A DNA stretch of 64,000 nt from Rebecca billardiae RCC1528 (taxonomy: Eukaryota; Protista; Haptophyta): positions 124,001 through 188,000 of the forward strand of contig OZ251244.1 in the NCBI GenBank assembly GCA_965240325.2, given 5' to 3'. Of the stretch, positions 1 to 59,495 are shown piece after piece. The stretch's first letter is position 1. Every line of letters begins with the position of its first letter. The notes beneath the pieces are model-generated. The model ran no database searches and was not told the origin of the DNA. It saw only the letters and a list, made by a program, of their open reading frames with translations. The translations under genes were made by a program, and so were the position numbers.

Positions 1-148
1 TTAATTATACATATATAATTATTATTATATATATTGCATCATCATACGTATAGTGACTGGCGGGCTGGCACCGCGCGGACGACAAGGCATCAGAGCCGCC
101 TATATGCATCGTCGGTGTGCATCCGCTACTATCGTCGCGTATATTTCG

Positions 149-2711: not shown

Positions 2712-5700
2712 CATGGCGGCGGTCGTGCATCCCGCCGAGCCGGGCGCGGATGTGGCGGACGCCGCGGCTGCGGCGGCTGCGGCGGCGAACGAGCCGATGA
2801 TCGAGCCGACCAGCAGCGCCGGCACGCCGCCCAGCGGCGCGCCGCTGCTGCGCGCGCTCTCGACAGGCGTGCCCCTGCGGCGCGCGCTCTCGGGCGCCGT
2901 CACGGCCGCGGCCGCGCGCACGCCGCCCTCGCCCGCGGGCAGCACGAGCTCGCAGTGGGAGGGCGTGGACGTGCGCCGCCGCCTCGAGAGCGCCCGCCGC
3001 GCCGGCGTCGCGCGGCGCTGGGCGATCACCCTCCCGCTGGCGCTGCTCGGCCTGTCCCTCACGCTGGGCGGGCTCGGGCTGTGGCTCTCGCGCTCGGCGG
3101 GCAGCGAGTGGTGGTGGTGCGCGCGGAGAGAGAGGGGCCGTGCGCCGCGCGGCGCGGAGAGGGGGGGCAGGGGGATGGCGCCCGCGCGGCGCAGCGCGCG
3201 GGGCGGCGGCTGCCGCGCGCGCGCGCTCGGCGTGCCCTCGGCGTGCCCCCTGCCCTGAGTCTCCGCACGCGCCCCGCCCCGCCCCGCCCCGCCTGCTGCC
3301 CCCCGCCCGCCTGCTGCCCCCCGCCGCGCCGCGCGTGGGCGGCCTCGCTCAGGGTGGTGCTGCTGCCCGGCACGCTGTGCCTGATGCTCGCCGTGCTGCC
3401 CACCGACGAGTGGGGCATCACGGGCTGCCTGCTGCTCGGCGGCTGCATCATGGCCACGGTCACGGCCGCGCAGATCGCGGAGGCGCCGCGCGCGCTCGGC
3501 TGCGCGCGCGCGCGCTGCCAGGCGCCGCTCTCCGCCGCGGCGCACGCGCTGCTGCTGGCGAAGCTGCTCGTGTCCGTGCTCGCGAACGCGGCGCTCTGCG
3601 CCTTCTGCGCCGTGCACCTCCTGCCGCCCCGCCGCGCGGCTCGTCTCAAGCTGGTGCGCACGTGGCGCGCCATCGGGCTGTGGATGTGGCTGGGCGCGTT
3701 GCTTGCGCTGGCCGCCGACCTGCCCGTCCTCATCGAGCGCACGGGCGCCGGGCTGGCGGCGCCGGGGTCGGGCCTCGCGCTGGGCGTGCAGGCGTGCGTG
3801 ATGTTCTGCCTGGGCGCCCTCGCGCTCTCGCCGCACGCGCGCGTGTGGCTGCACTCGCGCTTTGCGGCGCAGGGCGCGGCCGTGAGCGCGGCCGCGGGCG
3901 TGGCCTCGGTGCGCGCCCGAGCGCGGCGCGGCGCGGCGCGGCGCGGCGGCGCGGCGTCGCGGCGGCGGTGGCGGCGCGAGGGGGCTGGCTGCCCGCCTGC
4001 GCACGCGCCGTCGCCCCGTCGCACGCCGCGCGCCGCCACGCCCTCGCCGCGCCCCCAGCCCGCGCCCACGCCCCGCGCGCCCGCCGCTCCCCGCGCGCGT
4101 GCGCGCGCGTGCGCCCCCGCCTCCGCGCGCCGCCGCGCGCCGCCGCCGCGCCGCCGCGCCGCCGCCGCAGCTGATGGGCTCGGCCACGCCCGCGCAGCTG
4201 ATGGCGGCGGCGACGCAGCGGTTCCGCGCGCTGCCGCTCGACCGGATCGAGCGGCGGCACCTCGAGTGCAACGCGCCCGACCCTTTGCTGTACGGGCGCA
4301 GCAGCGCCGCCTCCCTGTCGCACGTGGACGCCTTTGTCTCCCACTCGTGAGCCGCACACCGCGCACACCGCGCACACCGCCGCGCACACCGCGCACACCG
4401 CGCACACCGCGCACACCACCGCCGCGCACCACCGCACACCACCGCCGCCGCGCACCACCGCGCCGCCGCGCCGCGCGCGCCGCCGCGCCGCCGGAGCGCG
4501 CGCCGACGCGCGCGCGCGCGCCGCGGCCGCGCGCGCCCCCCGCCCTTTTTGCGCGCAGCTGGCACGACGACCCCGAGGGCAAGTGGGCGGCGCTGCAGGC
4601 GTGGCGGCATGACTTCCGCGTGCGGCACGGCCGGGAGCCGCTCGTCTGGTTCGACCGCGCGTGCATCGACCAGACGGACATCGAGACGGAGCTGCGCCAC
4701 CTGCCCATCTACCTCGCCGGGTGCAACACGCTGCTCGTGCTGTTCGGCCGCACCTACTTGCTGCGCCTCTGGTGGTGCGCGCGCGCGCTGTGTGCGCGAG
4801 TGCGCGTGCGCTGTGTGCGCGTGCGCGCGCGCGCGCGAGCGTGCCACGCGGCGTGCGCGCTCACTCTGCCGCGCGCCCGCGCCCGCGCCCGCCGCCGCCG
4901 CCCCCCTGCAGCGTGATCGAGCTGTTCGTCTTCCTGGCGATGGGCGGCCATGCTGTCGAGCTGGTCCCGCTCAGCCCCGACGCGGCCGTGCTCGACGCGG
5001 CCGCGTGCTTCGACGCGGCCGCATGCGCGTCTTCCAACAGCGAGGAGCACGCGCGGCTGCTGTCCTTCATCGAGGCGGCGTCGGGCACGATGGAGGCGTT
5101 CAACGGGCAGGTGCGCGCGTTCCTGGGCAGGGCGGGCGCGGAGACGCAGGGCGGGGGGCGGCTGCGACGCTCCGCCGCCGCGGCACACTCGGCGCGCGGC
5201 TCCGCCACCGCCGCCACCGCCGCCGCCGCCGCCACCGCCGCCGCCAGCAGCCGCAGCCCCTCGAGCTCGCCCGCGCGCGCGCGCGGCGCGCTGGGCTCGC
5301 GCATCCTGGTGCGGGACGGGCTGGCCGCGCACTCGAGCGCGGCGGGCGGCGCGGAGCGCGGCACGCCGCTGCGCGAGCTGCGCGGCGCGGCGACCTTCGC
5401 GCTCGACTCGGTGAGCACGGGGCTGCGCGCGTCTGTCAACGCGGTGGGCGGCGCTGTGGACGCGCTCGGCGACGCGGTCGACGCGGCGGTGGGCGGCGCG
5501 GTGGGCGTGGTGGGCGCGGTGGGCGGCGCGGTCGTGGAGCACCTGCCGCACGCGGTCGACGCGGCGGTGGGCGGCGCGGTCGGCGCGGTCGGCGGCGCGG
5601 TGCAGCCCCTCCGCCGACCCTCCTCGCCGACCAGGTCGCCGCCCCGCTCGCCGCTGCGCTCGCCGGCCAAGTGGGGCGGAGGCGGCGGCGCGGGCTCGCC

Positions 5701-6118
5701 GCTCCGGGGCGACGGCGGCGGCGGGGGCGGCCGGTTTGGCGCGCGCGCCATCGCCGCCGCCGAGGGGGACAGCGGCGGCGGCAGCGGCGGCGGCGGCGGC
5801 GCGCGCCCGCGTCTCTCGCCCCTCGGCCGCGAGCAGCGCGGCCGGGCGGCGAGCCTCGCCTCGGCCTCGGCCACGGAGGCGGAGACGGCCGGCGGCGGCG
5901 CGGCGGTCGGCGCCGTCGGCTCGGCGCGCCCGCGCGCCGAGTCGGTGCCCCCTGCCGCGCTCGGCGCGGCTGCGGCCGCGGCCGCCGCAGGGGATGGCGG
6001 CACAGAGAGCCCCGCCGGGGCGCCGAGCGCGCTGCCGCCGCTGGGCAGGCCGGGCGGCGACAGCGGCGGCAAGCTCGACCTCGACCTCGCCGAGCTCGAC
6101 GACGCCGACAATGTCTAG
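2712..6118 (+). CDS. Multipass membrane protein with TIR-like domain; predicted exons 2712-3116, 3353-3908, 4171-4346, 4559-4774, 4912-6118
   Basis: All four GT-AG introns preserve frame and rebuild DAFVSHSWHDD...VWFDRACIDQ...LPIYLAGCNTLLVLFGRTYLLRLWCVIELF. About six hydrophobic segments lie upstream and a low-complexity tail downstream. Confidence 0.82.
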
Positions 6119-7352: not shown

Positions 7353-7485
7353 TCAGCGGCCGATCGCGTGTGCCGTGCCTTCGATCAGCTCGTCCACGAC
7401 GGCGGGCTCGGCGAGCGTCGACGTGTCGCCCAGGTCGGCGGGCGAGACGCGCTTCCCCTTCGTCGCGATCTTGCGCAGGATGCGC

Positions 7486-7519
<34 letters not shown>

Positions 7520-10011
7520 CGGGCGCGAGCTGCAGCGCGTCGGGCGCCGCAAACGGCCCGACGCCCGCGCGCACGGCTGCCACGAGCTCCGGCGAGACGG
7601 CCTTGAGCGCGCCCAGCGCGTCGGGCGCGCCGAGCTGCTGTGGCGCGTCGTCGTTGAGCGTGACGAAGCAGTAGAGCGACGCCCCCTTGAGCGGGTGCTC
7701 CACGCCCACCACCGCCGCCTCCGCCACCGCCCCGTGCGACAGCAGCGCCGCCTCCACCTCCGCCGTGCCGATGTTGTGTCCCGACACGATCACCACATCG
7801 TCCACGCGGCCGGTGATGAGATAGTCGCCGTCCAAGTCACGCCGCGCGCCGTCGCCGGTGAGGTAGTAGCCCGCGAACGGGAAGTAGGTCGCCTCCATCC
7901 GCGCGTGGTCGCCGTACACGGAGCGCAGCATCGACGGCCACGGCCCCTTCAGCGCCAGCAGGCCCTCCGCCTCCGCAGGAGCAGCGCCGCCCTCCGCCTC
8001 CGAGCCGCCGCCCGCGCGCGGCGGCGGGTCGGGCAGCTCGGCGCCCGTCTGCGGGTCGAGCAGCACGGGCTGCACGCCGAAGAAGGGGCGCATCGCGCGG
8101 CCCGGCTTCTGGCGCAGCCCCGCGTACGGCGGCGGCAGGATCGCGATCGCGCCCGTCTCCGTCTGCCACCACGTGTCCACCACGGGGCAGCGCCCCTCGC
8201 CCACCACGTCGTGGTACCAGCGCCACGCGGCCGCGCCCAGCGGCTCGCCGACTGAGCCGAGCAGCCGCAGGGATGCGCGCGAGGAGGCCAACACCGGCTC
8301 GTCGCCCGCGCGCTCGAGCGCGCGGATCGCGGTGGGCGCGGTGTACAGGTGCGTCACGCCGTGCTTGTCCACCACGCGCCACAGCCGGCCGCAGTCCGGG
8401 TGGCTCGGCACCCCCTCGAACACGAGCTGCGTCGCCCCGTTGAGCAGCGGCCCGTAGGCCACGTACGAATGGCCGGTGATCCAGCCGCAGTCGGCGGTGC
8501 ACAGCCACACGTCCGCGCCGGGCTGGAAGTCGAAGGCGTACTGCGGGCGGGCGCGGCGCGGCGCGAGGTGTGTCGCGCACCGACGCCGCGGCGCACGGGG
8601 CGGGGCAGCGCGGCGCGGCGGCGCGGCCGCGCGGCGGGGCGCGGGGCGGCGGGCGCGCGTGAGGCGCGCGCGCGGTCGGGCGGAGCGCGCCCGCTCTGTA
8701 GGGGCGCGCAAGGCCGCGGGGGCGCGAGATGCAACCCCCTTTGCCCCGGCGTGCGGGGCGCGAGATGCGATCTCCCGCCCCGCGCGCGCGCGTGTGTGTG
8801 CGTGTGCGCGTGTTCGCGCGTGTGCGCGCGTGTGCGCGCGTGCGCGCGTGTGCGCGTGCGCGCGTGCGCGCGTGTGCGCGTGTGCGTGTGCGTGTGCGCA
8901 CCTTGAACGACGTGGCCGCGCCCACCATGTAGCCGCCGACCGTGTGCAGGATGCCCTTGGGCGCGCCGGTGGAGCCGGAGGTGTACAGGATGAACGCGGG
9001 GTCCTCCGCATCGAGCCACTCCACCGCGCACTCCGCCGGCTGCGCCGCCGTCGCCTCGTGCCACCACGCCGCGCCCGCGGGCAGCGTCGGCTGTGGGTAC
9101 TGCGCGGCTGAGAGCCGCCGCAGCAGCAGCACGCGCGACGGGTCGACGGGCGTGCCCTTCTCCGCGGCGAGGTCGAGCGCGCGGCCGGCGAGGCCCCACA
9201 GGTCCACCATCTTCTTCCCGCGCATCACGCCGTCCGCCGTGATCAGCGCGCTCGCCCCCGCCGCCGCGACGCGCGTGGCGAGCGAGGTCGACGAGAAGCC
9301 GCCAAACACGACGGCGTGCACCGCGCCGATGCGCGCGCACGCGAGCATGGCGATGGGGAGCTCGGGGACCATCGGCATGAAGATGGCGACGCGGTCGCCC
9401 TTCTTCACGCCCCGCGCGCGCAGCGCGCCCGCCAGCCGGCACACCTCCGCGTGCGCCTCCGCGTAGCTGTACGCCTCCGGCTGGAGGGCGGACGCGTCGC
9501 CCTCGTCGTTGCGCTCGGCGAGGAAGCATGGCCGCGCGCCGAGGCCGGCGCGCACGTGGACGCCGAGCGCGTTGTAGCACAGGTTGGTGCGCCCGCCCTT
9601 GAACCACGACGTCTCCACCCGCCCCGCGCGCGCGTCGAAGTTGGACGCCACCGCCGCGCTCGGCTCGAACGGGACCTCCCAGTGGAACTGGCGGCCGAGC
9701 TCGGACCAGAACCCGGACGGGTCGGCGATGGAGCGGGCGTACATCGCGTCGTACTCGGCGATCGAGGCGAGGTGGTGCGCGCCCGACGAGAGGAACGCCT
9801 CGGGCACGGGCACGGCCGCCTCCTCCGCCGCCGTCGCGCGCGCGGCCGCGCGCGGCGAGAGCGCCGAGCGCGCGTGCGCGCCGCGCGCCGCCGCGCGCAC
9901 GCGCGCGCGCGGCGATGCCACGGCGGCATGCGCGCCGAGGCCACTGGCGCACGCGAGCGCCACCACGGCGGCGAGCGCGAGCGCCGTGCGCGGCGTTGCA
10001 CCCCGCGCCAT
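7353..10011 (-). CDS. ACS: Acetyl-CoA synthetase (acetate-CoA ligase), probably plastid-targeted; exons 10011-8902 and 8540-7353
   Basis: [80 protein letters not shown] intron 8901-8541 is in frame. N-terminus is a signal peptide followed by an Arg/Ala/Ser-rich transit-like stretch. Confidence 0.95.
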
Positions 10012-10258
10012 CTCTTTCCGCGCGACCGACGCGCCGGACGGGAGGACGACGCGCGGGCGTGGGCTGCTCTTCGCGAACCGAAGTGACGCCACCGTGACGA
10101 ACCCAGTCTCCGTGGGGTCAGCAAAAAGAGTCCGGGCGAGTCGGCGAACGGGCGAAGCCCCACCAGCACCTCAACTCCCGGACCCCGGCGGCAGCAGGGT
10201 GGCTAGAGGCTCAGGCCGCGTGCCACGCGTCTCCACAGCTGCGCCGCGTGCAAGCACC
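10012..10258. promoter_or_regulatory. Putative bidirectional promoter between ACS and RPS19
   Basis: Only 247 bp separate the two divergent ATGs. Confidence 0.55.
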
Positions 10259-11130
10259 ATGGCAGCGCCGCGTGTGAGCAACAACGCGCCCGAGAAGGGC
10301 GGGTGCGGCGTCACGGTGAAGGACGTGCCGGCGAACGACTTCATCGTCGCGTACGCCGCGCACCTCAAGCGCACGGGCAAGATCGAGGTGCCCAAGTGGG
10401 CCGACCTCGTCAAGACGGCCAAGTTCAAGGAGCTCGCGCCGTACGACCCGGACTGGTACTACGTCCGCGCTGGTGCGCGCACCGAGCGGCCGAGGCGCGC
10501 GCGCCGGGCGGGGATGGACGGGGTGGGATGGACGCCGCAGGCACGATGCGCCCACGCGCGCCGCCGGGCGTGGCTGCCTGCCACGCAGCCGGCCGGCGGC
10601 GCGGAGGCGGCGCCACGGTGATGGCCGCTGGCCGGCCGGCGGCGCGGGCGCGGCCCGATGGGCCGCGGCTGGGCGACGGCTGGCGGGGACGGGTGCCTCC
10701 GGCGGGCGTGCACCGCCGTGCACGTCGCCGTGGGGCCAGATGGCGCCAGCGCCCGCCGCGTCAGCGAGCCCGACCTGGCTCTCTGCCCGGGCGCCCGGCC
10801 TGACGCGCCCGCGCCCCCCCTACGCGCGCACGCGCCGCGCCCCGACTCGCGCGCGCAGCGGCGATCGCACGGCGCGTGTACCTGCGGGGCAACGTGGGCG
10901 TGGGCGCGATGCGTAAGATCTACGGCGGGCGGCAGTCGCGCGGCACGATCAAGGAGAAGTTCGCCACGTCGGGCGGCTCGATCCCGCGGCACATCTTTGG
11001 GCAGCTCGAGAGCATGAAGATTGTCGAGAAGAGCGACGGGCCCAAGGGCGGGCGGCGCATCACGGAGACGGGGCAGCGTGATCTGGACTCGATCGCCGGG
11101 CAGATCAAGGCGGCCCAGCAGGAGGAGTGA
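10259..11130 (+). CDS. RPS19: 40S ribosomal protein S19 (eS19); exons 10259-10472 and 10859-11130
   Basis: [53 protein letters not shown]|[10 protein letters not shown]...[17 protein letters not shown]; GT-AG intron 10473-10858 restores the frame. Confidence 0.97.
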
Positions 11131-22225: not shown

Positions 22226-22332
22226 CTGGCCGATACACACCCTTACCGCTCTGCGCATGGGGGACCCATGCTCGCAGAGCGAGCGTGATTTCACCACGCG
22301 CAGAGCGAGCCGGGTGCGTGTGTATCGGCCAG
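22226..22332 (-). mobile_element. 107-bp miniature (MITE-like) derivative of the Mutator-like element
   Basis: CTGGCCGATACACAC...GTGTGTATCGGCCAG, made only of the two ends of 25945-26842. Flanks CTACATGGG / ACACATGGG match at 7 of 9 positions (decayed TSD). Confidence 0.85.
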
Positions 22333-22552
22333 ACACATGGGCGGTGACAGTTGGCGGGCGTCAACTCGCCTGCCTTGTCTGCCACCAACGCCGACTTCGT
22401 GTCCGGACGATCGGGCACTGCCGCCGACGAATCAGGAGACCCGCGTCGTCCTACCTGTGTCGTTAAATCATAGAATGAGTACAGTATTCTGGTGGGAACA
22501 GCGCAGAGCGCGAGTTCGTCGCCATCATCAAATCCATCGTGTCCCGAGAATC

Positions 22553-24007
22553 ATGGCGGCCGTCGCGGGCACGGCGGTGGAACAGCCGCCCACGCTAGGC
22601 GACATGCCGACGGAGGTGCTCGAGCGGATCCTCACGCTCATCGACAGCGGGCGCGGCGTCGCGCGCGCCGCTGCCGCCGCGAGCCTCTTCCGCACGCCGG
22701 CCGAGCGCGCGCTTCGCGAGCGCGCGCGCACGCGCGGGCATGCGCACGTGCTGCCAGCCACGCTGCCGGACGGTGTCGCCACGTGGACGGAGGAGCTACT
22801 CGCGCGGGAGCGCGTGCTCGAGCTCGCCCACGCGCACGCGCTCGTCCTCGGCCGTGGCGGCGAGGCCCGCTCCGCGCGCGCCTGGGCGGTCTGCGCAGAC
22901 GGGCGCGCGCACAGCTGCAGTGAGGACGAGCTGCTGGCGCTGCTGCACGCGGGCGGGGCGGGCGGGGACGGCGCGCCGGCGTTGCTGGCGCCAGCCTCCT
23001 CGCTCGGCGGCGTGCGCGTGCGCGCGCTCGCCGCCGGCCACTCGCACACGCTCGCGCTGAGCGAGGCCGGCGCCGTGTACGGCTGCGGCGAGAACGGGTG
23101 CGGCCAGCTTGGCCTTGGGCACGATGGCGGCACCGAGAGGTTCGTGCCGCTCGGGGGCCTGTGGGCGCGGGCTGGGGGCGAGGGCGGGGCGGAGGGGAGC
23201 GGCGCGCTCGCGGTCGGCATCGCCGTCGGCCGCACGCACAGCCTGGCGCTCGACACCGCGGGGCGCGCGCACAGCTGGGGCGGCAACGAGTGCGGCCAGC
23301 TCGGCCACGGCGACACGGAGACCCGGTGGGAGCCGACGCGCATCGAGGCGCTGGACGGCGTGCGCGTGGGCGGGCTCTCGGCTGGGTACGCGCACACGCT
23401 GCTCCTCTCGACGGCGGGCGCGGTGTACGCGTGCGGCGACGGCGAGCACGGCGAGCTCGGCCACGGGCGCACGCAGCAGCGGCACAGGCCTGCGCGCATC
23501 GAGGCGCTTGCGGGCGTGCGCGCCGTGCATGTGAGCGCGGGCTACGAGCACAGCCTGGTGGTGGACGCCGGCGGCGCCGTGCACTCCTTCGGCGGCGGCG
23601 GGTACGCCAAGCTCGGCCACGGCACCGAGGCGGGCGAGCTGCTGCCACGGCGCATCGACGCGCTGGCAGGCGTGCGCGCCGTGCGGTGCGCCGCCTCCGA
23701 GTGGCACAGCGCTGCGCTGGACGCGGACGGCGGCGTGCACGCCTTCGGGGACGGCCAGGGCGGCCAGCTCGGCCCGCAGGCGGGCGCGCTCTGCGCGCGC
23801 GGCGTGCGCGTGCCCGGCCCCGCGCGTAAGCCAGTCGCGAGCTGCCTGCTCACGCCCCTCTACGCGCTGTACGCCACGGCGGACGGCTGCCTCTACGCGC
23901 GCGCACTTGTCATCGAGCCTAGCGCGCGCGGGCAGCGCGCGAGCTCGGCCAGGCACAAGCTGCTGAGGCTGAGGGCGGTGCCGCCGCTGCGCACGGCCGT
24001 CGTCTGA
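22553..24007 (+). CDS. F-box-like + RCC1-repeat protein (paralog 2)
   Basis: LGDMPTEVLERILTLI, TWTEELLARER shared with paralog 1, multiple GQLGHGD RCC1 repeats; intronless. Confidence 0.88.
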   Translation: MAAVAGTAVEQPPTLGDMPTEVLERILTLIDSGRGVARAAAAASLFRTPAERALRERARTRGHAHVLPATLPDGVATWTEELLARERVLELAHAHALVLGRGGEARSARAWAVCADGRAHSCSEDELLALLHAGGAGGDGAPALLAPASSLGGVRVRALAAGHSHTLALSEAGAVYGCGENGCGQLGLGHDGGTERFVPLGGLWARAGGEGGAEGSGALAVGIAVGRTHSLALDTAGRAHSWGGNECGQLGHGDTETRWEPTRIEALDGVRVGGLSAGYAHTLLLSTAGAVYACGDGEHGELGHGRTQQRHRPARIEALAGVRAVHVSAGYEHSLVVDAGGAVHSFGGGGYAKLGHGTEAGELLPRRIDALAGVRAVRCAASEWHSAALDADGGVHAFGDGQGGQLGPQAGALCARGVRVPGPARKPVASCLLTPLYALYATADGCLYARALVIEPSARGQRASSARHKLLRLRAVPPLRTAVV

Positions 24008-29184: not shown

Positions 29185-30444
29185 GAACCGTGGCTACGTG
29201 TCCGTGTCAACCGAGTCGCTCGGCGAGGCGCCCGCGCCGATGTGGGCGCGCCCAATGGCGAGCGGACGGCCGTCGACGAGGGCCATCAGCCTTGCCGACC
29301 CCGTTCAGAGCTCCGCTCCCGCGCCGGGCCGAGCCGAGCGCGGATTTGGAATCTGCCGATCGCGAAAACACGCCGAACAAGTTCTGAAAAGGAAAAGAAA
29401 AGAAATCAAAACTCGATTTAATCAGATGGACCCCCTACAGCAGACCAGACAGCCGCTCATAGCTGCCCTGTCGGCCTGCTGAGTGAGTCCGGGCTGCCGC
29501 GCTCGTCACGGCGGCTCGGGCAGTCTGGCACTGGGCCCCGAAGTGCGCACCGCCGTGGTGCCAGCTGCCGGCGCCGTGGCCGCCACCCGCGGTGCCAGAG
29601 ATGGCCATCTCCCTTGGACGCGGGTAGGGCTGACGAGACCGTCGCACACGTATGCCAGTCTGCAGCCTGAGGCGCACCGGGCCAACCCCCCTGGCGCGGA
29701 ACAAGCGTGCGGGGGAGCCGTCACTCGACGGCCGCCGAAGGGTCGACGAAAGCAGTGCCAACCCGTATTGCCCTATAGGTGATTGAGAGAGGGGTGCCCT
29801 TTTCCATCAGCCCGTGTAGCTGACGCGGCGCCAACCCATACGGGGGGCCGAGGCCCCAGGCGGGCGCGGGAAGCGTTCACCTTCCCGTGGTCGGATACGG
29901 TCGCGGGAAGGGGAACGCGGATACAATCCAGCCCACGGAGCCGTCCACAGGTGCACCGGACAGCGAACGAGTGCACTCGTTCCTGCACCCGCCCGCAACA
30001 TGGCGCCAAAAGATCTCACACGCACCCCCGCCCCGCGCGGGCGCCGTCATCGTCGTGCATCCTTCGCGCGCAGGTGATGAGACGACGCCACGCTCGGAGT
30101 GCAGCGCAGCCCTCATGAGCATTTGCGACCAGGCCGAGCCACTCGGCGGCGACGTATCGGCGCCTGCGGGCTGCGGCCCCGTACGCGGTCCAAAAGCCTG
30201 CCATGGGCGGCGCTGACGCATGGCGGACATGCTGACACGAGTTTAAATAGCAAGCGGATGCGCAGAGCCGAGACAGGAGATGACCAAGGAGAGCCGAGAA
30301 GCCGATAATAATTATTAATAAAAGGGGGCGCTGCGGAAGTGCGGATCTGTTTTGCCAACATAATGCCAACCGGCACTTCTCCAAAATCGGTTGATGTCGA
30401 TCGACGAATCAGGAGACCTTTCTGAACTGTCGAATCATAAAGTA

Positions 30445-30606
30445 CAGTTTTTCAATAATTGAGACGCACACAGCTCAGGCAGGCATCAGTTTCGATGCAT
30501 GAATACTCAAGAGACGCACATAGCTCATGCTCCCGAGATTGACGCCGACAGTAGTAGTCCGTAGTATGAGCTGAGTGCGTCTCTCAGATTTCTTCTTGGT
30601 AAGCTG
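30445..30606. mobile_element. Degenerate ~160-bp MITE of the Tc1/mariner-like family
   Basis: TA-CAGTTTTTCAATAATTGAGACGCACACAGCTCAGGCAGGC on the left; TGAGCTGAGTGCGTCTCT...TCTTGGTAAGCTG inverted on the right; matches the ends at 1515 and 52028. Confidence 0.6.
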
Positions 30607-30673: not shown

Positions 30674-33587
30674 ATGCTCGCGGCGGCGCTCCTGCTGCTG
30701 CTGCTGGCGGGGCCGGCGGCGGAGGGGGCGACGGTCGCACGCGGGTACGTCGCGTCATTCCCTTCGCCCACGATCCACGCCACCCCGCGCACCGTCCCGC
30801 TCGACCCGTCCAACGCGGCGGTCGCGGCGCTGCGCGACGGCGTGACGGTGATGCTGTGGGCGCGCTTCAACGACCTCTCGCCGCAGCGCATCCAGCCGCA
30901 TGTGCGGCTGGGCAGCCGCACGTACGAGCAGATGCTCACGCCCTTCGCGGGCGTCCACGGCGGCTTCAACATGGGCGTCACCGGGCCGACCGCGCTCGAG
31001 TCGATCGGCGAGAACGCGAGCGCGTGGCACCACTACGCGGCCACGTACGCGCGCGAGAGCGGCGCGCGCGTGCTGTACATCGACGGGCGCGAGGTGCACC
31101 GCGACACGCTGAGGGCCGGGTACGACTACGTCGCGGACGAGCCCTACTTCGTGCTCGGCAACGCGGCGAACAACGTGCTGCGCCCCGAGTCGTACCTCTC
31201 GAGCGGCCAGCTGTGGCTCTGCTTTGACGGCCAGCTCGACGACCTCGCCATCTTCGGCGGCGCGATGAACGGCTCGGAGGTGGGCGCGCGCGTGGGCGTG
31301 TCGCTGACCAACCGGCTCGCCGCCGGCCTCGAGCCCGCGCTCTCCTTCTTCTACAACTTCAACACGGGCGGGCTGGGCGCGGGCGGCGCGTCCGCGGCCG
31401 ACGGCGGCGCGCCGCTCGAGCCCAACCTCGGCCACGCTGGCGCGGCCGGCGACCTCGTGCTCGGCCGCGCGGTGAACAAGCCGACGGAGGACCTCGCGAC
31501 GCACATGACGAAGACGGGGCTCAAGCTGCCCCTCGCCGCCTTCGAGCGCACGCCGCTCTCCGCGAGCGCCACGTGGGCGGCGGTACGGCCGCTCGACGCG
31601 GACGCGCCGCACGTGGTGCTGCTGGCGCCGGGCGAGCGCGTCGCGCTGGCGCTCGCGGCGGAGGACGGCTCGGTGGAGGTGGTGGAGGCGAGGGCGCCCG
31701 AGCCGTTCGACGCGCCGCTCGAGCTGCCGACCAACCGCACCGCGCCGCGCGTGCACCTCGTCCCGCACGCGCCCGCGCTCGCGCCGCTCGGCGCGCTCCG
31801 CCCCGTGTACCTGCGCCGCCCCGCCGTCGAGCGCCGCCCGTTTGCAATGCGTCTCTGGGGCACCGGCGGCGGCGGCCGGCGGCTGCGCGCGCAGCTCGTG
31901 CGCCCGCCGGCGCGCGGCGCGCTGTTCGAGCTCGCGCACGAGGCCGCGCCGCGCGGCGCGCGCCTCGCCGAGCCCGGCGCGCTGCTCTCCGGCCGCGCCA
32001 ACCTCGTGCTGTACGAGCCGGACCCGGCGGGCGGCGCGGGCGAGGATGGCTTTGAGTACCGGCTGCTGCCCGCGGCGGGCGCGGGCGCGGAGGAGGCGGC
32101 GGCTGGGCTCGAGGCGGGGGCGGTGCTCGAGGCGCTGGCGTCGGAGGCGGTGAACGTGAGCATCCGCGTCGAGAACATCGACGACCTGCCCACCGCGCAG
32201 CCCGCGAGCGTCGAGCTCGACGAGGACGGCGGCGGCGCGCGCATCGAGCTGCGCGCGGCGGACGCGGACGTGGGCGGCGTGTTGGCTGTGCACCTGCTCA
32301 GCCTGCCGCGCCACGGCGGCCTGTGGTACGAGCGAGGCGCGGGCGGCGAGCGCGTGCGCATCGAGGCCGCGCACGTGGTGTACCACGTGGGCGAGGGCCT
32401 CGTCGAGCAGTACCTCTCCGAGATCCTCGCCGTCTCCTCCTTCTGGGGCTCGGCCAACTCGGCGTCCTACCACCCGCTCACCGCGCTCGGCGCGCCCGGC
32501 TGCGGCGCGTACGGCGAGTGTACGAGTGACGGGCCGTGGACGCGCGAGCCGGGGGCGTACCCGGCGGTGGGCGAGCGCGTGCTGCACCCGCCGAACGGCG
32601 CGCTCGCCACCGTCCGCGCCGTCCACCCCGACGCCGCCACGCTCACCCTCGAGCTCGCGCCGCTGTGGAAGCCCGACCGCTCGGCGCCGCCCAACGGCAC
32701 GGCGAGCGGCGCGGCGCCTGGCGCGGGCGCGATGCGCCGCTGCGCGTTCGCGGCGCCGGCGCTGGCGCACGCGTACCCCGACGACTGCGCGTTCGACGCG
32801 GTGGCGGCGGACGGGTCGGCGCAGGTGCTCACCGTGCCGCGCGACTCGATCGGCGGCCTCGAGCACGGCTGGTCGCCGCTGTACAAGGGGTACGCGCCCG
32901 GCCAGCCCATGGCGGGCGGCGGCGTGTACGGCCCGCAGTACGTGTTTGCACACTCGCACGACGACAGCTACGAGCGGCACGGGTACACGGAGTTCCTCGA
33001 GGCGGGGGTGGAGGAGGCGGTGTACCTCACGTCGGTGCAGGTGGGCATGCCCCGCGGCGCGGGCGCCATCGTCGGCATCCACGCCCGCGGCCCCGACGGC
33101 GTGAGCTGGGTGCGTGTGTACGGCGGCTCGGCGCAGTCGTCCGAATCGGAGCGCGCGACGCGGCTGCGCCAGTATTGGTCGTGGGAGTTCGCGGTGTGCC
33201 GCACGCACTTCCGGACGCGGCAGATCCGGCTCGAGCTGGACACGAGCGCGGAGACCGGCATCGCCGACTGGAACTACATCGACTACGTCAAGCTCGTCGG
33301 CGTGCGCGAGCTCTCGAGCGGGATGCTGCCGCACGGCGTGAGCGCCGTGTGGTACGCGCCCCAGCGCCACTTTGCGGGGCCGGACAGCTTCGACTTCGCC
33401 GCGAGCGACTGCCCGGGGAAGGCGCTGCGCTCGTCGGCGCCGGCGCGGGTGGCGGTGCGCGTGCGCGGCGTGAACGACCGCCCCGTCGTCTCCGACGTCT
33501 CCGTCGACGCGCTCGTCGGCGAGCGCGCGCGCGTCGAGCTGGCCGTGACCGACGTGGACGTGGATGAGCCGAGGCGCGACGACGACG

Positions 33588-33627
<40 letters not shown>

Positions 33628-36600
33628 AGGGGGCGCGACGGTGAGCGTGACGGCGCTGCCCGCGCTGGGCGCGCTGTACGCGGAGGCGCGCTCGGAAGAG
33701 CCGCTCTCCCGCGAGGCGCCCGTGCAGCTCGCGCGCGGCGCCACCCACCTCTACTTCGAGGCGCGCTCACTGGACGGCGCGGACGTCGGCGCGCTCCGCA
33801 CGGACCGGGAGGGCAGGCGCTGGCTGGAGCTCACGATGGCGTACGGCGCGACGGACGCGCTCGGCGCGCGCTCGGCGGAGGAGGCGGAGGTGACGATCCG
33901 GCTGGTCGAGCCGCTCGCGCCCGCCGACGACCGCTCGGCCGAGCTCCTCGCCCTCGCCATCGTGCTGCCCGCGCTGCTCGCGTGCGCGCTCTGCTTTGGC
34001 GCGCGCCAGGCGGCGCACAACCGCCGGCTGAGGGCAGCGTTGGACGGCATGGGCGCCGCGCGCGCGCCGCCGGTGCCGCTGCTGGTGATCACGGACGCGG
34101 GCGAGGACGCGGACGACGAGATGGCGCTGGTGATGGCGCGCTTCCTCACCGACGCGGGCCACATCGAGCTCCTCGGCGTCGTCGCCAACCTCGCCCCCTC
34201 CTACGAGCGCGCGCGGCTTGTGCGCGGCACGCTCGACGTGCTCGGGCTGACCAAGGTGCCGGTGGGCGTGGGCACGAACGGCGGCAGCCGGCACCACGCG
34301 GCGAGCTTCGTGGAGAGCGCGCCGTACATCCCGCCGGTGGGCGGCGAGCGCGCGCAGAGCCTCGAGCCCGGCCGCGCGCTCCTCCACCGCGTGCTCGTCG
34401 CCGCGCCGCCGCAGTCGGTCACGCTGCTCTGCATCTCCTCGCTCAAGGACGCGGCGCTCTTCATGCGCGACAACCGCGCGCTGTGCGCGGCCAGGCTGCG
34501 CCGCGTGGTGGTGATGGGCGGGCTCGACCTGGCGCGGACGGAGGCGGAGCGCACGCTCGTCACCGACTCGGCGCACAACAACACCTTCGACCCCGACGCC
34601 TCCGCCTTCTTCCACCGGCTGTGCGTGCTGCTGCGCGTGCCCGTCACCGTCGTCTCGCGGCACGCCGCTTACGCGTGCCCCGTGCGGCGCGAGGTGTACG
34701 ACCACCTGGGGCACTCGGGCAACCCGGTGGGCTGGCGGCTGCGCAAGATGCAGCGCGACGCGATCGAGGACCTGTGGCGCCGCGCGTGCGCGCCCGACGG
34801 CGCGCCCGCGCGCCGCGGCCTCCCCGCGCGCTGCGACCGCGGATGGTTCTCGCGAACCTTCACGGCCGGGCGCGCGGACGCGCGCGCGCCGCACGAGCCG
34901 ATCTGGGATTTGGTGCAGAGCTTCAACCTGTACGACGTGATCGCGCTGGTGGCGTGCGTGCCCACGCTGGCGGACGCGCTGCTCGAGCCGCTGCACCTCG
35001 ACGCCGTGCGCCCGCACCCGCGCCTCGGGTGGCACGAGCTGATCGGCGCCAGCGCCGCGCAGCCCGGCGTGCGATCGGTCACAGACCTGCGCATCGTGCT
35101 GCACCGAGGTATCTCCTCAGCGGTGGGGCTCGGCCGGCGCGACGGGCGGTGGCGCCAGCCGATCGTGCTGCTGCTCGACTCGGCGTCGATCGACGCCGCG
35201 CTCGCGCCCACGCTGCTCTGCCTCTCCGGCCTCCTCGCGTACAACGCGCTCGCCCGCGCCGCCATCATTGTCGTCGACGAGTCTGAGGCGCGCGCGGACG
35301 CGGCTTCGGAGAGGGCTGCGGAGAGATCTGCAGAGAGATCTGCAGAGAGCGGCTCGGAGGAGACGGAGCGCGCGCCCGCCGAGCAGGGCGGGGCGCACGC
35401 GGCGGCGAAGGCGGGGCGCGCGGACGACGCGCGCCGCGCCGCCGCGCGCGCCGACCTGAGCGCGCTGCTGCGCGAGCTCTCGATCGGCGAGGTCGAGGTC
35501 CATTGGGTGCGGCCGGCCGCGCCCGGCCGCGGCGGCGCCGCCGGCTGCGGCGGCAGCGGCAGCGGCAGCTGGAGCGGCAACTGGGCGAGTGGCGGCGCGG
35601 CGGCGCGCTCGCTCCGAGCGTCGTCGGCGGACGGCTCGCTGCCCGGGCTCGACGCGCCGCCGCCGCCGCCCCACCAGCTGCGCCGCGTCGGCAGCAACGC
35701 GAGCAGCGTGGGAGACAGCGAGCCCGCGGCGGCCGCGGCGGCCGCGGCGGCCGCGGCGGCGGTGGCGCGCGGCGTCGACCAGCTGGCGGCTGTGGTGCGC
35801 GAGTGCACGCCCTCGACGGGCTTCCGGCTGGTGCTGCCCACGGGGTGCCCGCCGCTGCTCGCCGCGTTCGCGAGCGCGCACCCGCTGCTGCTCCGCGAGC
35901 GCGCCGCCGAGTGCATCGCGCTCGGCGAGTGGGGCGAGAGCGAAGCGCAGCTCGACGGCGGCGCCGCTGCTGCGGAGGCGGGGGCGGGAGCGGGCGTGGG
36001 CGGCGCGTCGTGCGCGGCGGAGGAGTGGACGGAGCCCGCGCCGCCGCAGCCGCTGCCGCTGCGCATCGACGCCCCGCACGGCTGCGCCGACCCCGCGGGC
36101 CGCGCGGCCGGCGAGCAGCTCGCCGCCACGTGCGCGGCGCTCGGCGTTGCGCTCACGCTGGTGCCGCGCGCGCTCACCGAGGCGGCCGCGCTTCCCATCT
36201 CTGCGGTCGAGGCCGCGACGGGCGTGGGCGGCGCGCTCGGGCAGCGGCTGCTCTCGTCGGTGCAGACGCGCCTCGCCGCCATCCGCGCGCGCGCGGCCGA
36301 GCCACGCGAGGCGGCGGCGGCGGCGGCGGCGTGCGCGCCCACCTGCGCCCAGTTTGAGTTGGCCTTTGGGGCGCAGCGCGCGGGCAGCGCCGCGCGCGGG
36401 GCGGCGCAGGAGGAGGAGGACGCGTGGTCGGGCGCGAGCGTGCTCCCCGCCGCGGGCCCCGTGCTCCTGCTCGCGGCCACGCGGCGCGCGCACTTCTTCG
36501 CCACCCTCCCGAACACGCTCCCGCTGCGAGGCACCGAGCACTGCGCCCTCAGCCCAGCGCCGCTCGACGACGCCGAGCTGCGCACCTGCGTGACACAACT

Positions 36601-37657
36601 CATGCTCAAGGCAGCCTCGCTCGACTCGTCCGACTTTGTCGGGTACCTGGCCGCCGCCGAGGCCGAGCTCTCGGACGAGGAGCACGCGCGCGGCCCCGCC
36701 GCCTCGCACCGCCCCTCCTGCTCGCGCGACTCCGACGCCGCTTCGCACGGCGGCGCGCACGGCTGGCGCCCGGGGCGCGCGTCGCGCGACGGCTCGCGCC
36801 GCCCATCCTACGGCTCCGCGCGCGGCTCCGCGGGCGATGGCTCCTCGGCGCGCGGCGCGCTCGGCGCGCTCGGCGCGCTCGGCTCGTTCAGCGGGCGCGT
36901 GCGCTCGCGCGCCGCGCGCCGCGCGTCGGTGCAGCCCGCGCCCACCGACGCCGCCGCCGCGCCCGCCGCCGAGCTCTCCGCAGGCCGGCTGCTGGCCGTG
37001 CAGGGGCTCGGCCACGTGAGCCTCGCGGACACGCTCCCCGGCTGGCTGGGCGCGCGGCGGGCGGACGAGGGAGCAGACGAGGGCGGCGCGCCGAGCGGCG
37101 AGGGCGGCGAGGGCGGCGTGGTGGCGGGCGAGGGGCCCTCCGACGCGGCGCTCGACCCGGTGCTCCTCGACGCGCCCGCAGACCCCGACCCCAGCGCGCA
37201 CGCCGAGCGCCACCCCTCGCGCCGCCACTCAGCCGCGTCGTCGTCGGCCGGTCTCGGCTCGTTCGAAGCGCAGGAGGCGGAGCATGACCGCCTCGAGCAG
37301 ATCCTGCGCGAGGCGAGCCACTTCGTGCCCCAGCACGCGGCCGGGCCGCCGGCCGGGCCGCTGGGGCTGCCCCATGCCGGCGGCTCGTCGGCGCGTGCCG
37401 GACGACGCCACCCAGGCTCGGGCCACGCCGGACGGCGGCACACGGGCGGCGCGGGCGGCACCGGCGTCGCGTCGCCCGCGCGCGGCGCGTCGTGCGCGCC
37501 GTCAGCGTCGCGGCGGAGCCTGCCGCCCATCTACAGGTCGTACACCGGCCCGACACCCGAGGCGGACAACAGCGGCCGACCTCCGAGCAGCAGCGCACAG
37601 CCGCACCCATCACCGGGCCCGTCAGTGTCGCGCTCGCCATCCATCACAGAGACTTGA
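30674..37657 (+). CDS. Large single-pass receptor-like protein: signal peptide, LamG/ConA-like, cadherin/Ig-like, galactose-binding-like domain, TM, inosine-uridine nucleoside hydrolase domain, degenerate second hydrolase domain, disordered tail
   Basis: Uninterrupted ~2327-codon ORF. MLAAALLLLLLAG; WHHYAATY...LYIDG...FDGQLDDLAIF; NIDDLP / DSFDF...VRGVNDRP; IRLELDT...WNYIDYVKLVG; TM LLALAIVLPALLACALCFG at ~33944-34000; VITDAGEDADDE, VVANL, ISSLKD, VVVMGG, AHNNTFD, LYDVIA. Confidence 0.88.
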
Positions 37658-55963: not shown

Positions 55964-57449
55964 GGCGTGATGGCGATTCCGGAGAAAAGAAAAGCCGGAC
56001 CTGACGGTGAGGACCTCCTCCTCACTCTGAACTCCTCGGAGCACGGCCGGAGGAGTGAGGACCGCCGCGGAACGCCCAAGTCTAGTGCACGACAGCACGA
56101 GCTGCTCGGCGCACGGCTGTCGCGTTCCGCTTCGGACACGCGCGCAGTGCGCGTGACACTGCGGTTCTGCATCGTGACGCGCTCCGAAAGTTCGTTCTTT
56201 GGAAGTTCGCCTCCCATTCCGCCTCGCCGCAGCCGCCTGAGACAGTCCGGTGACGGCCCGAGCACGCATGCATCAGCCTGCGGCATCGCCGCGCAAAGCG
56301 TCAAGCATGGCATTTGACTTGTGGTACACTAGAGCCGTGACGACAGCTTGCCCAGAAAGCCGTGCGCCCGCGTCGAATGCCATGGGCTGCCTCAACGGTC
56401 ACTAGCGCCCCGACCATTGCCTAGTGAGCACTGCGCCGCACCGATTCCCACCGTCGTCGGCCACTGAGTCTGAGTGAGTGCCTCACAACTGAGTACTGAG
56501 CAACCAGATTCAGATTGCAGCGGATCTGATGGACATTAGACAAGGTACTCGGCAGCACACGGTCGCGGTCGCGCCAGGTGGAGCCTTATCACACACAGCG
56601 CACATAATTCGCGCCTGTGTTGCCAGACACGCCGCCCGGATGGCGGGCAGGTGCGCGCACTGCGATTCACTTGATTCAGCCCGCGGAGGCCGCTAGTGGA
56701 CTGACGCTTTGTGCCGCGATGCGTGCACACACGCATGCTAGATTGCTCGGCTTGCGGGCGCAGCGGAGTGCGGCACCAGGGGCGATGAGCGACACGCGAC
56801 AAGCATCGTGATGCATATCCGCCTGCACCCATCAGGCGTGGACCGCAGCCGAAGCATTATTATTGCGATGACGCGAGTAGCGATGAATCGGTGCAGCAGG
56901 CGCGACGCTCATCAGTCATCAGTGCCAAACGCCGTGAAGAAGCGCGCGGGCAAACATCAGGCGCATCGGATTACAATTAGGAGATCGTCATATTCATCAA
57001 CGGCTAGCGAGCGGGCTCGTCCTGCCCAGTCGGGATGTAGCGTTCAAGCGGCGATGGCTGCTTGATTGCCTTGATGCCATCAATCCGGACTATGTGGCGG
57101 TAAAAATGTAATCTGAAGATGAGCGCGCGGAAAGATCCCGACTCATAAACTGAGCGGCATTTCCGCCGCGTGCGCGCGTGCGGAAGAACTCGAGTCATCA
57201 CCCCACACGATAATGAATAGTGTTTCTCTACTCCTGTCTTGTATTTGCAAGAGCAGGTAACATTTACAGGTACAACGACAAGGCCCTTGACAAGGCACTT
57301 GGACGGCGGGAGGCACGGCCACCCGCCCGCGCGCGCGCGAGCCCGCGTTTCGGGCGAGGCAGTTGGCTGGGGCCCTCCGACCCGCAAGCAGCTGGCGTCG
57401 CGTCCGAGCATCTCCACGGTCGACGCGCGCGCTCGGCGACGAAGCGCCG

Positions 57450-59495
57450 ATGGCGGCCCGACTCATCCCGACGGCGCAGCCGATGTCGCGCAAGTGGTCG
57501 CGCTCCTCCCTCCTCGCGCTGAGCACGCAGTCCTCCGCCCTCCTCGTCTGCGGCGGCGCCTCCGCCGAGGAGGCGGCACTCGCCGAGGCGAAGCTGCACA
57601 CCGCCGGCTTTGCGCGCGTCGACGTCGCGCGCTCCTTCCTGTGCGCGCTCGAGGCGGTGGACGCGGACGTGCGCGACGCGGGCTGCGTGGCATACACGCG
57701 CATCTTCTGCGACGTCGGCGCGTGGGAGGCCAACGCCGTCACGTTCGTGCGCATGCTCCTCTCGAGCGGCTGGCCCGTGTCCGTGGTCGTCCTCGCCAGC
57801 GCGCCCGCGCGCGGCTCGAGCGCCGAGGCGGCGTGCGCGCTGCTCAGCTCGGCGTGCGGCGTGGACGGCGTCCTTCGGCGCGGCGCGACCGCGCTCGAGC
57901 TCGCCGACTACGCGAGCGGCTTCGAGGAGGCCGCCGACCGCTCGCTGAGCGTGCAGGCACTGCTTGGGCCGATGCCGCGCCGCCCGTCCGACAGCGAGCT
58001 GGCGCCGCCGGCGCAGGACGCGCCGCGCGGCGTGGAGCCGGGCGCGCCGCGCGCGCTGCCCTCGCGCGCGCGCGCGTACTGGGACGTCGTGCCCGGCGAG
58101 CAGATCGAGACGCACATCGTGGTGATGGGCTGCGCGCTGCTGCTCGAACAGCTGCTCGCGGGCAGCGGCGGCGGCGGCGGCGGCGGCGCGGCGGCGGCGG
58201 CGGCGGAGGCCGAGGCGCGCGCGGCAAAGGCTGCCGGGCCCGTGGGCGGCGCCGGCGTGGAGGGCGCAGGCGGCCGTGGTGACCGAGCGTCGCCGCTCGG
58301 CCTGCCCGACGTCGGCGCCGTGCACTCCGCGCTCGAGTACCAGAACGAGTACGGCGGCGCGTGCGCGTCCAAGCCGGCCGAGTGCGCGTGCGCGCCGACG
58401 CGCATCCACAGCGGCGGAGGCGGCGGCGGCGGCAGTGGCGGCGGCTGCTGCTGCTGCCCGTGCGCCGCTGCGCTGCCCACGCCGCCGCGCGCCGACAGCC
58501 CGCGCGGCTCGCCGCTGCTGCTCTCCGACACGAGCGACGACGACGAGGGCGATGGCGGCGCCGCCGACGGCGCGTTCGGCAGCAGCGACAGCGGCAGCAG
58601 CGGGTGCGCATCGCCGCGCTCGGCCACGCGCGGACGCGGAGGCGGCGGCGCGCGCGCGGCGCCCGCAGAAGCGGAGGCGGAGGCGGAGGCGGAGGCGGAG
58701 GCGCCGCCGAGCGCGCAGGACGCGTACCGCTTCCTGATGGTGCTCAAGCTCACGCTGGAGCTCGACGACCGCCTGCTCGTCGTCGCCGCCGTCTACCTGC
58801 AGCGGCTGTGCGCGACGCTCGGCGCGCGCGCGCTGCGCGGCCGCTGGCACGAGCGCGTGCTCGGCGCGGCGGTCGTCGGGCTCAAGGCGCACTCGGACAC
58901 GCCGCCCACGCTGGGCGAGCTGGGCTCGCGGCTGGCGATGTGGAGCTGCGACGCGCGCCAGCTGCGCCAGCTCGAGGCGGCCGTGCTGCGCGGGCTGCAG
59001 TGGCGCACGCTCGTGCGCGCCTCTCAGTACGAAGGCACGCGCATGCAGCTGCGCGCGCTGCACGACACGCGCTGCCCGCTCGCGCACGGCGGCGCGGCGC
59101 ACGAGCAGACGCGGGCGCCGGGGGGCGAGCGGGGCGCCGCCGCCGCCGACGGCGACGGCGACGAGGCGTGCCGCGAGACCTCGCCGCCGCACCGCTACGA
59201 CGGCTTCGCCTCGCCCTCGCCGCCCTCGCGCCGGCTGCGCGAGCGTCGCCCGTCCGCTTGCTCGCCTAACGCGCTCGTGCGCCGCTCGCCCGCCGCCTCG
59301 GCGCGGCCCTCGCCCTCGTCCAGCGGCGGCTTCCGCAGCCGGCGCGCGGCGGCGCAGGGCGGCGCGAGCTCGACGGCCGGGGCGACGGGCGGTGCCGGCG
59401 CGCTCCCGCTCGGGGCGCTGTCCGCGCCGCTGCACCTGCGCCCGCCGCCGGGCACGGCGCCGACCATCACTGTCAGCGCGTGGCGCGAGTGCTGA
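57450..59495 (+). CDS. Receiver (REC)-like domain fused to a cyclin Y/PHO80-like cyclin box
   Basis: REC-like ~57531-57911 (ALLVC...YTRIFCDV...FVRML...PVSVVVLAS...GVDGVLRRG..ALEL); cyclin box ~58703-59065 (PSAQDAYRFL...VAAVYLQRL...RVLGAAVVGLK.HSD...LRQLEAAVLRGLQWRTLVRASQY...LRAL); intronless. Confidence 0.75.
   Translation: MAARLIPTAQPMSRKWSRSSLLALSTQSSALLVCGGASAEEAALAEAKLHTAGFARVDVARSFLCALEAVDADVRDAGCVAYTRIFCDVGAWEANAVTFVRMLLSSGWPVSVVVLASAPARGSSAEAACALLSSACGVDGVLRRGATALELADYASGFEEAADRSLSVQALLGPMPRRPSDSELAPPAQDAPRGVEPGAPRALPSRARAYWDVVPGEQIETHIVVMGCALLLEQLLAGSGGGGGGGAAAAAAEAEARAAKAAGPVGGAGVEGAGGRGDRASPLGLPDVGAVHSALEYQNEYGGACASKPAECACAPTRIHSGGGGGGGSGGGCCCCPCAAALPTPPRADSPRGSPLLLSDTSDDDEGDGGAADGAFGSSDSGSSGCASPRSATRGRGGGGARAAPAEAEAEAEAEAEAPPSAQDAYRFLMVLKLTLELDDRLLVVAAVYLQRLCATLGARALRGRWHERVLGAAVVGLKAHSDTPPTLGELGSRLAMWSCDARQLRQLEAAVLRGLQWRTLVRASQYEGTRMQLRALHDTRCPLAHGGAAHEQTRAPGGERGAAAADGDGDEACRETSPPHRYDGFASPSPPSRRLRERRPSACSPNALVRRSPAASARPSPSSSGGFRSRRAAAQGGASSTAGATGGAGALPLGALSAPLHLRPPPGTAPTITVSAWREC

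Follow-up and report, generated by a model that had tools for sequence, protein, structure and literature searches.

The locus and its gene

We analysed a stretch of 64,000 nucleotides from the haptophyte Rebecca billardiae RCC1528 (assembly GCA_965240325.2, contig OZ251244.1, positions 124,001 to 188,000; hereafter the window, from whose first letter all positions are counted) and concentrated on the long open reading frame (ORF) that occupies positions 30674 to 37657 of its forward strand. An earlier note, made from the letters of the DNA, had proposed that this frame encodes a receptor-like protein in which an adhesion or lectin ectodomain is joined through one transmembrane (TM) helix to a cytoplasmic nucleoside hydrolase. 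Our analyses indicate that the domain following the helix is a relative of the bacterial effectors XopQ and HopQ1 and not a classical inosine-uridine (IU) nucleoside hydrolase, and that a second, degenerate copy of the same fold comes after it. As judged from profile matches, hydrophobicity and composition, the order of domains is putative signal peptide, LamG domain, cadherin/Ig-like modules, TM helix, hydrolase, degenerate hydrolase copy and disordered tail. The gene and those of its features that run from the membrane inward are the following.

30674..37657, + strand: whole gene, single exon, 2327 codons plus stop (ORF list, translation, third-position GC, alignment with the relative P0001)
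33941..34012, + strand: single TM helix, residues 1090-1113 (hydrophobicity)
34013..34063, + strand: basic cytosolic juxtamembrane segment, residues 1114-1130 (Arg cluster)
34064..35107, + strand: XopQ/HopQ1-like domain with predicted nucleoside hydrolase fold and intact catalytic residues, residues 1131-1478 (NCBIfam, PDB, AlphaFold2, Foldseek)
34094..34117, + strand: putative non-canonical Ca2+/ribose motif DAGEDADD, with D1141, D1145, D1147 and D1148 (aligns with DPNKDPDD of HopQ1 and XopQ)
34934..34936, + strand: aspartate of the NLYD motif (D1421), counterpart of XopQ D399 (alignment with 4P5F/7JLU and with HopQ1/XopQ)
35153..36643, + strand: degenerate second hydrolase-like domain with low-complexity inserts, residues 1494-1990 (hhalign, HMM matches)
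36644..37654, + strand: Ser/Gly/Arg/Pro-rich low-complexity tail (composition; no Pfam match)

The frame opens with a GTG at 30575 and closes with the stop codon at 37655-37657, and its first ATG, at 30674, gives a protein of 2327 amino acids (aa). Because the GC content of the window is 63-82%, the length of an open frame is by itself weak evidence. Stop-free frames come easily at 70-78% GC and several long antisense ORFs overlap the gene, and these are the grounds on which the gene model could be seen as an artefact, whether as a frame left open by chance in GC-rich DNA or as two adjacent genes read as one. Against such an artefact, the GC content of third codon positions (GC3) is 0.95-0.99 in one frame at nearly every 300-nt step from ~30700 to ~37600 and ~0.65 on both sides, and no frame change or intron-like dip in GC3 was seen along the ORF at these steps. 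Protein homology to P0001 (2341 aa, one ORF on an 11.5-kb Logan contig) is collinear over residues 1-1536 and so crosses the junction of ectodomain, TM helix and hydrolase. P0001 and a second homologue, P0002 (Diacronema lutheri KFE25_002800, 2408 aa, one ORF in the NCBI genome and again in a separate assembly from ENA), are likewise unbroken ORFs, on three further assemblies (contigs L001, L004 and L005). The antisense chain of ORFs at 31354-37530 (- strand) has GC3 of 0.93-0.99, but its second-position GC is ~0.8 and it is interrupted by stops about every 100-700 codons, for which reasons we regard these ORFs as mirror artefacts of the sense gene and not as genes. The chance-ORF reading was rejected on GC3 periodicity and homology, and an artefact of either kind is hardly credible. 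By its codon-position signal and its homologues, 30674-37657 is one real, unsplit gene, and the uninterrupted frame of ~2327 aa that the earlier note had described is borne out.

Directly upstream of the ATG, the 300-nt stretch 30275-30575 has a GC content of 0.39-0.51 per codon position, against 70-78% in the gene, and is probably an intergenic or promoter region.

A hydrolase domain of the XopQ/HopQ1 type

The hydrolase domain begins about 25 residues past the TM helix, and the motifs that the earlier note had read in it lie where it placed them (VITDAGEDADDE at 34085-34120, VVANL at 34178, VVVMGG at 34505, AHNNTFD at 34571 and LYDVIA at 34928). An AlphaFold2 model of the domain, computed from an alignment of 45 relatives, reached a predicted local distance difference test (pLDDT) of 96 and a predicted template modelling score (pTM) of 0.93, and a Foldseek search with this model returned XopQ and many nucleoside hydrolases with a probability of 1.00, in agreement with the expectation that the region after the membrane adopts the nucleoside hydrolase fold. 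XopQ was at the top of this search (TM-score 0.78-0.79, E 1e-22), with the classical hydrolases at TM-scores of 0.51-0.60 and 13-16% identity. Sequence matches in the PDB were to XopQ entries only (7JLU, 4P5F and 4KL0; E 6e-31 to 3e-29), and the NCBIfam XopQ model (NF041355) matched residues 1131-1443 (E 2.1e-40). The score of this last match, 138.7 bits, is far under the equivalog cut-off of 500 bits; orthology to the bacterial effector XopQ was therefore rejected, the domain being instead a distant relative within the family.

The aspartate motif of the domain is of the DxxxDxDD type found in XopQ and HopQ1, and not of the classical DxDxxxDD type. When aligned with HopQ1 (from a plasmid of P. 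savastanoi pv. phaseolicola) and XopQ (from a plasmid of Robbsia andropogonis), the domain has in common with them D1141, D1145, D1147, D1148, D1298, N1302, D1306, W1368, W1391-F1392, W1411 and Y1420-D1421. Counting equivalences along the alignment with 4P5F, D1145 corresponds to XopQ D120, one of the positions mutated in the inactive XopQ protein of a recent preprint, in which D120N was combined with D399N (10.64898/2026.06.15.732069). An alternative aspartate motif, DPNKDPDD in HopQ1 and XopQ, is also the defining feature of the HopQ1-like proteins (HLPs), which are known from algae, fungi and mosses and among which sequences of haptophytes and heterokonts have been placed in an 'algal clade' (Piechocki et al. 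2018, PMC6019455). Taking the motif, the profile and structure matches and the predicted model, the domain is a member of the XopQ/HopQ1-like (HLP) clade and not a classical IU-nucleoside hydrolase. The fold claimed by the earlier note has thus stood, and the classical type has not.

That the domain could be a classical IU-type nucleoside hydrolase serving purine/pyrimidine salvage, and membrane-bound only incidentally, draws its support from Pfam, where IU_nuc_hydro (PF01156), which the earlier note had expected over ~34075-35120, was indeed found, over residues 1140-1353 only and as a marginal pass (35.2 bits against a cut-off of 34.2, E 1.5e-8). Classical nucleoside hydrolases have a leaving-group His where the LYD motif of this protein has Tyr. 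This difference stands against a salvage enzyme, as do the DxxxDxDD motif, the low identity and TM-scores to classical enzymes given above, and the inability of XopQ and HopQ1 to cleave nucleosides. We rejected the salvage reading on the motif and the fold distance and regard it as very improbable.

XopQ has been an enigmatic effector for two decades. It was long held to be inactive, and its crystal 4P5F contains bound ADP-ribose (ADPR) (PMC8910321). The preprint cited above, of June 2026, has now reported that 2'cADPR, an isomer of cyclic ADPR (cADPR) which TIR proteins make and which serves as a TIR immune signal in plants, is hydrolysed to ADPR by XopQ and HopQ1 with near diffusion-limited efficiency, that the bond cleaved by XopQ is the ribose-ribose O-glycosidic bond, and that 3'cADPR, cADPR, pRib-AMP and nucleosides are not cleaved (10.64898/2026.06.15.732069). 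Because the domain belongs to the XopQ-type clade, keeps both key aspartates, and XopQ is reported to be a specific 2'cADPR hydrolase, an NAD-derived nucleotide is, by analogy, more likely to be the substrate than a nucleoside. If the domain works like XopQ, the bond cut would be the O-glycosidic one between the riboses and not an N-glycosidic bond. The earlier note had envisaged N-glycosidic cleavage of a nucleoside or an NAD-related molecule, and of this the NAD-related substrate fits the kinship with XopQ, whereas N-glycosidic cleavage does not.

A degenerate second domain and a conserved tail motif

To the first reading of the locus we add a second hydrolase-like domain following the first. 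The profile of the first domain matches residues 1812-1882 of the window protein together with collinear pieces of the equivalent regions of P0001 and P0002, and when the second-domain regions of the three proteins were compared by hhalign with the alignment of the hydrolase domain, the probability was 98.7% (E 1.6e-16, 241 columns). In this second domain the Asp motif and the aspartate of the YD pair are gone and the fold is broken up by low-complexity inserts, so that from these comparisons it is a pseudo-enzyme copy of the same fold. In soluble relatives, P0004 for example, both hydrolase copies are intact, and for this reason the receptor lineage seems to have been left with one enzyme and one pseudo-enzyme. 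Where the inserts of the pseudo-domain start, at ~35300-35350, a short in-frame ERSAERSAE repeat is found, with a slight dip in GC3. The tail that closes the protein contains a conserved motif, RLEQILREA, at 37289-37315, which P0001 and P0002 also have near their C-termini.

Ectodomain, membrane segment and topology

The part of the protein that precedes the membrane helix contains five features.

30674..30736, + strand: signal-peptide-like N-terminal segment, residues 1-21 (hydrophobic window 1-19 with a Kyte-Doolittle value of 1.85, small residues after it)
30833..31282, + strand: LamG/concanavalin-A-like lectin domain, residues 54-203 (Pfam Laminin_G_3; also in P0001)
32153..32320, + strand: cadherin-like module 1, residues 494-549 (Pfam Cadherin_4)
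32429..33301, + strand: conserved Cys-containing beta-rich module, residues 586-876 (conservation against P0001)
33335..33568, + strand: Ig/cadherin-like module 2, residues 888-965 (matches under cut-off)

The LamG-like and cadherin/Ig-like modules that had been noticed in the raw translation were both recovered over Pfam cut-offs, the former as Laminin_G_3 (E 2.3e-9, 38 bits against a cut-off of 27.6) and the latter as two stretches of Cadherin_4 (34.5 bits for the whole protein against 25.1). In module 2 the matches are all under curated cut-offs and comprise the NCBIfam tandem-95 repeat at residues 888-943 (E 4e-7), Pfam Big_9 and Cadherin_4. The module at residues ~586-876 has strongly conserved blocks and invariant Cys in comparison with P0001, and no Pfam match was found in it. 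Leads from the atlas to F5/8 type C were at 0.79-0.80, and an AlphaFold2 model from two sequences had a pLDDT of 37 and was unusable; the label 'galactose-binding-like' that the earlier note had given to an ectodomain module could thus not be confirmed. An in-frame run of ~17 glycines, adjoining an acidic stretch, lies in the ectodomain at ~33590-33650.

A protein search for relatives of ectodomain residues 20-1085 returned nothing and missed even P0001, probably because low-complexity candidates crowded it, and is hence uninformative. A scan of metagenomes with an alignment of the ectodomain found no relative of it, and no part of the protein matched the PADLOC defence models.

The single TM helix is the sole strong internal hydrophobic segment of the protein, in accordance with what had been proposed, its best 19-residue window being 1091-1109 with a Kyte-Doolittle value of 2.64. 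Its outer flank has a net charge of -3 and its inner flank one of about +4, with five Arg within ~20 residues on the inner side, and the basic cluster after the helix is also present in P0001, P0002 and four short relatives (P0098, P0023, P0014 and P0021). An acidic flank before the helix and five Arg after it fit an orientation with the N-terminus outside and the C-terminus inside (type I).

Relatives and domain combinations

An exhaustive search with the hydrolase domain yielded 1268 cluster representatives at E <= 1e-3, 273 of them at E <= 1e-30 and the closest being for the most part soluble proteins with two copies in tandem, and the closest named relatives of the window protein were from Diacronema lutheri and Pavlovales sp. 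CCMP2436. The same architecture does occur elsewhere: P0001 has the LamG/cadherin ectodomain, TM helix, hydrolase and pseudo-hydrolase in the same order, and P0002 combines a different ectodomain, PBP_like_2, with a TM helix and the same cytoplasmic hydrolase/pseudo-hydrolase module. In a maximum-likelihood tree of 140 hydrolase domains, those of the window protein, P0001 and P0002 form one clade (SH-like approximate likelihood-ratio test, SH-aLRT, 98). The domain matches and the tree indicate that one cytoplasmic module is reused behind different ectodomains, LamG/cadherin in two of the three proteins and PBP_like_2 in the third.

In the four short relatives an N-terminal TM helix is followed by the basic cluster and then by the hydrolase, with 0-15 residues outside the membrane; they are thus cases of tethering without a sensor. 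On this observation rests the main rival to a regulated receptor, namely that the TM helix of the window protein does no more than anchor an always-active XopQ-like hydrolase to the cytosolic side of the membrane, that adhesion or matrix binding is a separate task of the ectodomain, and that no signal passes through. It accords with a review that describes XopQ as monomeric and independent of any partner (PMC8910321). Nevertheless, the large ectodomains in front of the module are of two unrelated kinds, and one kind is a ligand-binding fold of PBP type; this is the usual pattern of sensor swapping, and the conserved pseudo-enzyme domain and conserved C-terminal motif suggest regulation. We consider ungated tethering unlikely, if still to be taken seriously.

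Of the short relatives, P0098 is encoded at L007:426-1919 and L008:426-1919 and P0023 at L006:3012-4679; L008 and the D. lutheri receptor P0002 come from the same ENA assembly, and the gene calls that follow P0098 and P0023 look like continuations split by a prokaryotic gene caller. Among 80 metagenome loci with the hydrolase domain (L009-L088) no new receptor type with a large ectodomain was found, nearly all of them encoding soluble tandem proteins and a few having short N-terminal TM anchors. Soluble two-domain XopQ-like proteins of ~850-1250 aa are common in these contigs of marine eukaryotes, with GC contents of 0.40-0.74.

Other members of the family combine the domain with different partners. 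In P0096, P0131 and P0003, from other protists, it lies C-terminal to guanylate-cyclase, AAA_16/NACHT and TPR domains in an NLR-like arrangement; in P0074, P0108, P0111, P0112 and P0130 it follows TPR arrays, and in P0135 it stands beside a protein kinase. The nearest fold clusters in the ESM Atlas were from diatoms (TPR plus hydrolase) and haptophytes. Given the cyclase/NACHT/TPR and kinase partners, the XopQ-like family appears to have a signalling flavour.

The Asp motif is degenerate in three of these fused proteins (P0003, P0131 and P0135), and this loss, together with that in the second domain of the window protein, bears on whether the first domain is an enzyme at all. It could bind a nucleotide, for example of ADPR type, without cutting it, and act as an intracellular sensor or scaffold tuning adhesion from the inside out, as the ADPR bound in the XopQ crystal and the long-held inactivity of that protein would allow. 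The first domain, however, keeps every acidic and polar residue conserved in the family, including both positions that inactivate XopQ, and XopQ itself, when given its proper substrate, showed very efficient catalysis. A non-catalytic role is, in our view, improbable.

A model for the function of the protein

Taking the sequence comparisons, the predicted structure and the analogy with XopQ together, the best explanation as a whole is that the gene encodes a type-I single-pass protein carrying an active XopQ-type glycohydrolase that acts on an ADPR-type nucleotide at the inner face of the membrane, and to this explanation we give slightly better than even confidence. The outside part is an adhesion or lectin-like ectodomain made of LamG, cadherin/Ig-like and Cys-containing beta modules, and the first cytoplasmic domain would be an active, Ca2+-dependent glycohydrolase. 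Its substrate would be an ADPR-type nucleotide, most plausibly a cADPR isomer made by TIR proteins such as 2'cADPR, so that the hydrolase would remove a second messenger in a manner comparable to a phosphodiesterase. More speculatively, the time or place of hydrolysis may be determined by the ectodomain and the pseudo-domain, with gating possibly achieved through ligand-driven clustering or through the release of an intramolecular pair of enzyme and pseudo-enzyme, comparable to the kinase-homology domain of receptor guanylyl cyclases.

Several observations weigh against this explanation. Identity to HopQ1 and XopQ is ~25%, and these two lie on a long branch in the opposite half of the tree, with single-domain proteins of ~350 aa, some of them bacterial, as neighbours, so that the substrate specificity may well be different from that of XopQ. 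The position of XopQ Y279 is occupied by His (H1301). Most members of the family are soluble tandem proteins. The signal peptide and the type-I topology are predicted from hydrophobicity and charge rules alone. That an extracellular cue controls the enzyme is pure inference, and since in the close relatives P0098, P0023 and P0021 the TM helix and the hydrolase come with next to no ectodomain, the arrangement may serve simply to tether the enzyme to the membrane. Finally, a quick scan with Pfam of the raw high-GC3 ORF pieces 2668-3255, 3886-4347 and 4613-6115 of a candidate TIR-like stretch in the window (2712-6118) gave no match, and splicing may be needed to read the domain there.

The most far-reaching version of the model is that of a receptor whose hydrolase destroys a TIR-derived cADPR messenger, such that a cue from outside would, at the membrane, silence an immune or death signal based on NAD or fix the level at which this signal takes effect, as part of a wider algal network with STAND/TPR, cyclase and kinase members. 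This version we regard as speculative and, taken as a whole, rather unlikely.

Eukaryotic algae own a large family of the XopQ-like domain, wired into signalling proteins of their own, and at this locus the domain makes up, in a pair of enzyme and pseudo-enzyme, the cytosolic portion of a receptor-like protein of the cell surface. Should the domain cleave a cADPR isomer, haptophytes would use TIR-type nucleotide signals with dedicated off-switches, the protein would be the first example of a receptor-linked second-messenger glycohydrolase, and the bacterial effector would look like an imitation of a regulator of host type. Because the hydrolase domain is small, confidently predicted and directly assayable, the question is testable now.

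Genomic neighbourhood

Elsewhere in the window, matches were obtained to an AMP-binding enzyme (7356-9224, - strand), ribosomal protein S19e (9578-10618, + strand), RCC1-like repeats (22289-24004, + strand) and, weakly, Cyclin_N (57291-59492, + strand). From these matches the neighbours seem to be ordinary eukaryotic genes with no evident functional link to the receptor.

Comparison with known systems

The domain family, its presence in haptophytes and single-pass receptor-enzymes as a class are already known. In agreement with the earlier note, which did not recognise this class of receptor-enzyme as described, the published full-text literature that we searched contained no paper describing it, that is, the combination of an ectodomain (lectin/adhesion or PBP), a TM helix, a XopQ-like hydrolase and a pseudo-hydrolase.

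The nearest likeness of the catalytic domain is to the effectors XopQ, HopQ1 and RipB of Xanthomonas, Pseudomonas syringae and Ralstonia (4KL0, 4P5F, 7JLU), with which it shares the predicted fold, the DxxxDxDD motif and the NLYD aspartate. Unlike these effectors, the window protein is eukaryotic, has no effector-type secretion region, and carries the domain behind a TM helix within 2327 aa and in front of a pseudo-domain. The HLPs belong to the same distinct clade, but the study that defined them covered the domain alone; the word 'transmembrane' is absent from that paper, which contains no description of receptor-like, STAND/TPR, kinase or tandem architectures (PMC6019455). The classical IU-, IAG- and pyrimidine-specific hydrolases (PF01156; RihA, YeiK and the Crithidia IU-NH) have the same superfamily fold and an acidic cluster of Ca2+ type at the first strand. 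They are, however, soluble oligomers of ~300 residues, and their motif differs.

A partial parallel on the side of domain composition is offered by Sde_0182 of Saccharophagus degradans, which has lectin-like carbohydrate-binding modules before a hydrolase-like domain that is inactive on nucleosides (PMC8910321). Sde_0182 differs from the window protein in being bacterial and in having no TM helix between its modules, so that all of its parts lie on one side of the membrane. It was not among the sequence matches of the hydrolase domain to solved structures.

In layout, the closest counterparts are the receptor guanylyl cyclases. These receptors consist of an ectodomain, a TM helix, a kinase-homology pseudo-domain and a catalytic domain. 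Like them, the window protein would start with a signal peptide and an ectodomain of ligand type, cross the membrane once and pair its cytoplasmic catalytic domain with a degenerate homologous or regulatory one, and, as in single-pass receptor-enzymes, its family swaps ectodomains on a constant cytoplasmic module. It would differ from them in that its output destroys a nucleotide signal instead of making one and in that its fold is unrelated. If its substrate and its gating are established, the window protein would represent a new class of receptor-enzyme.

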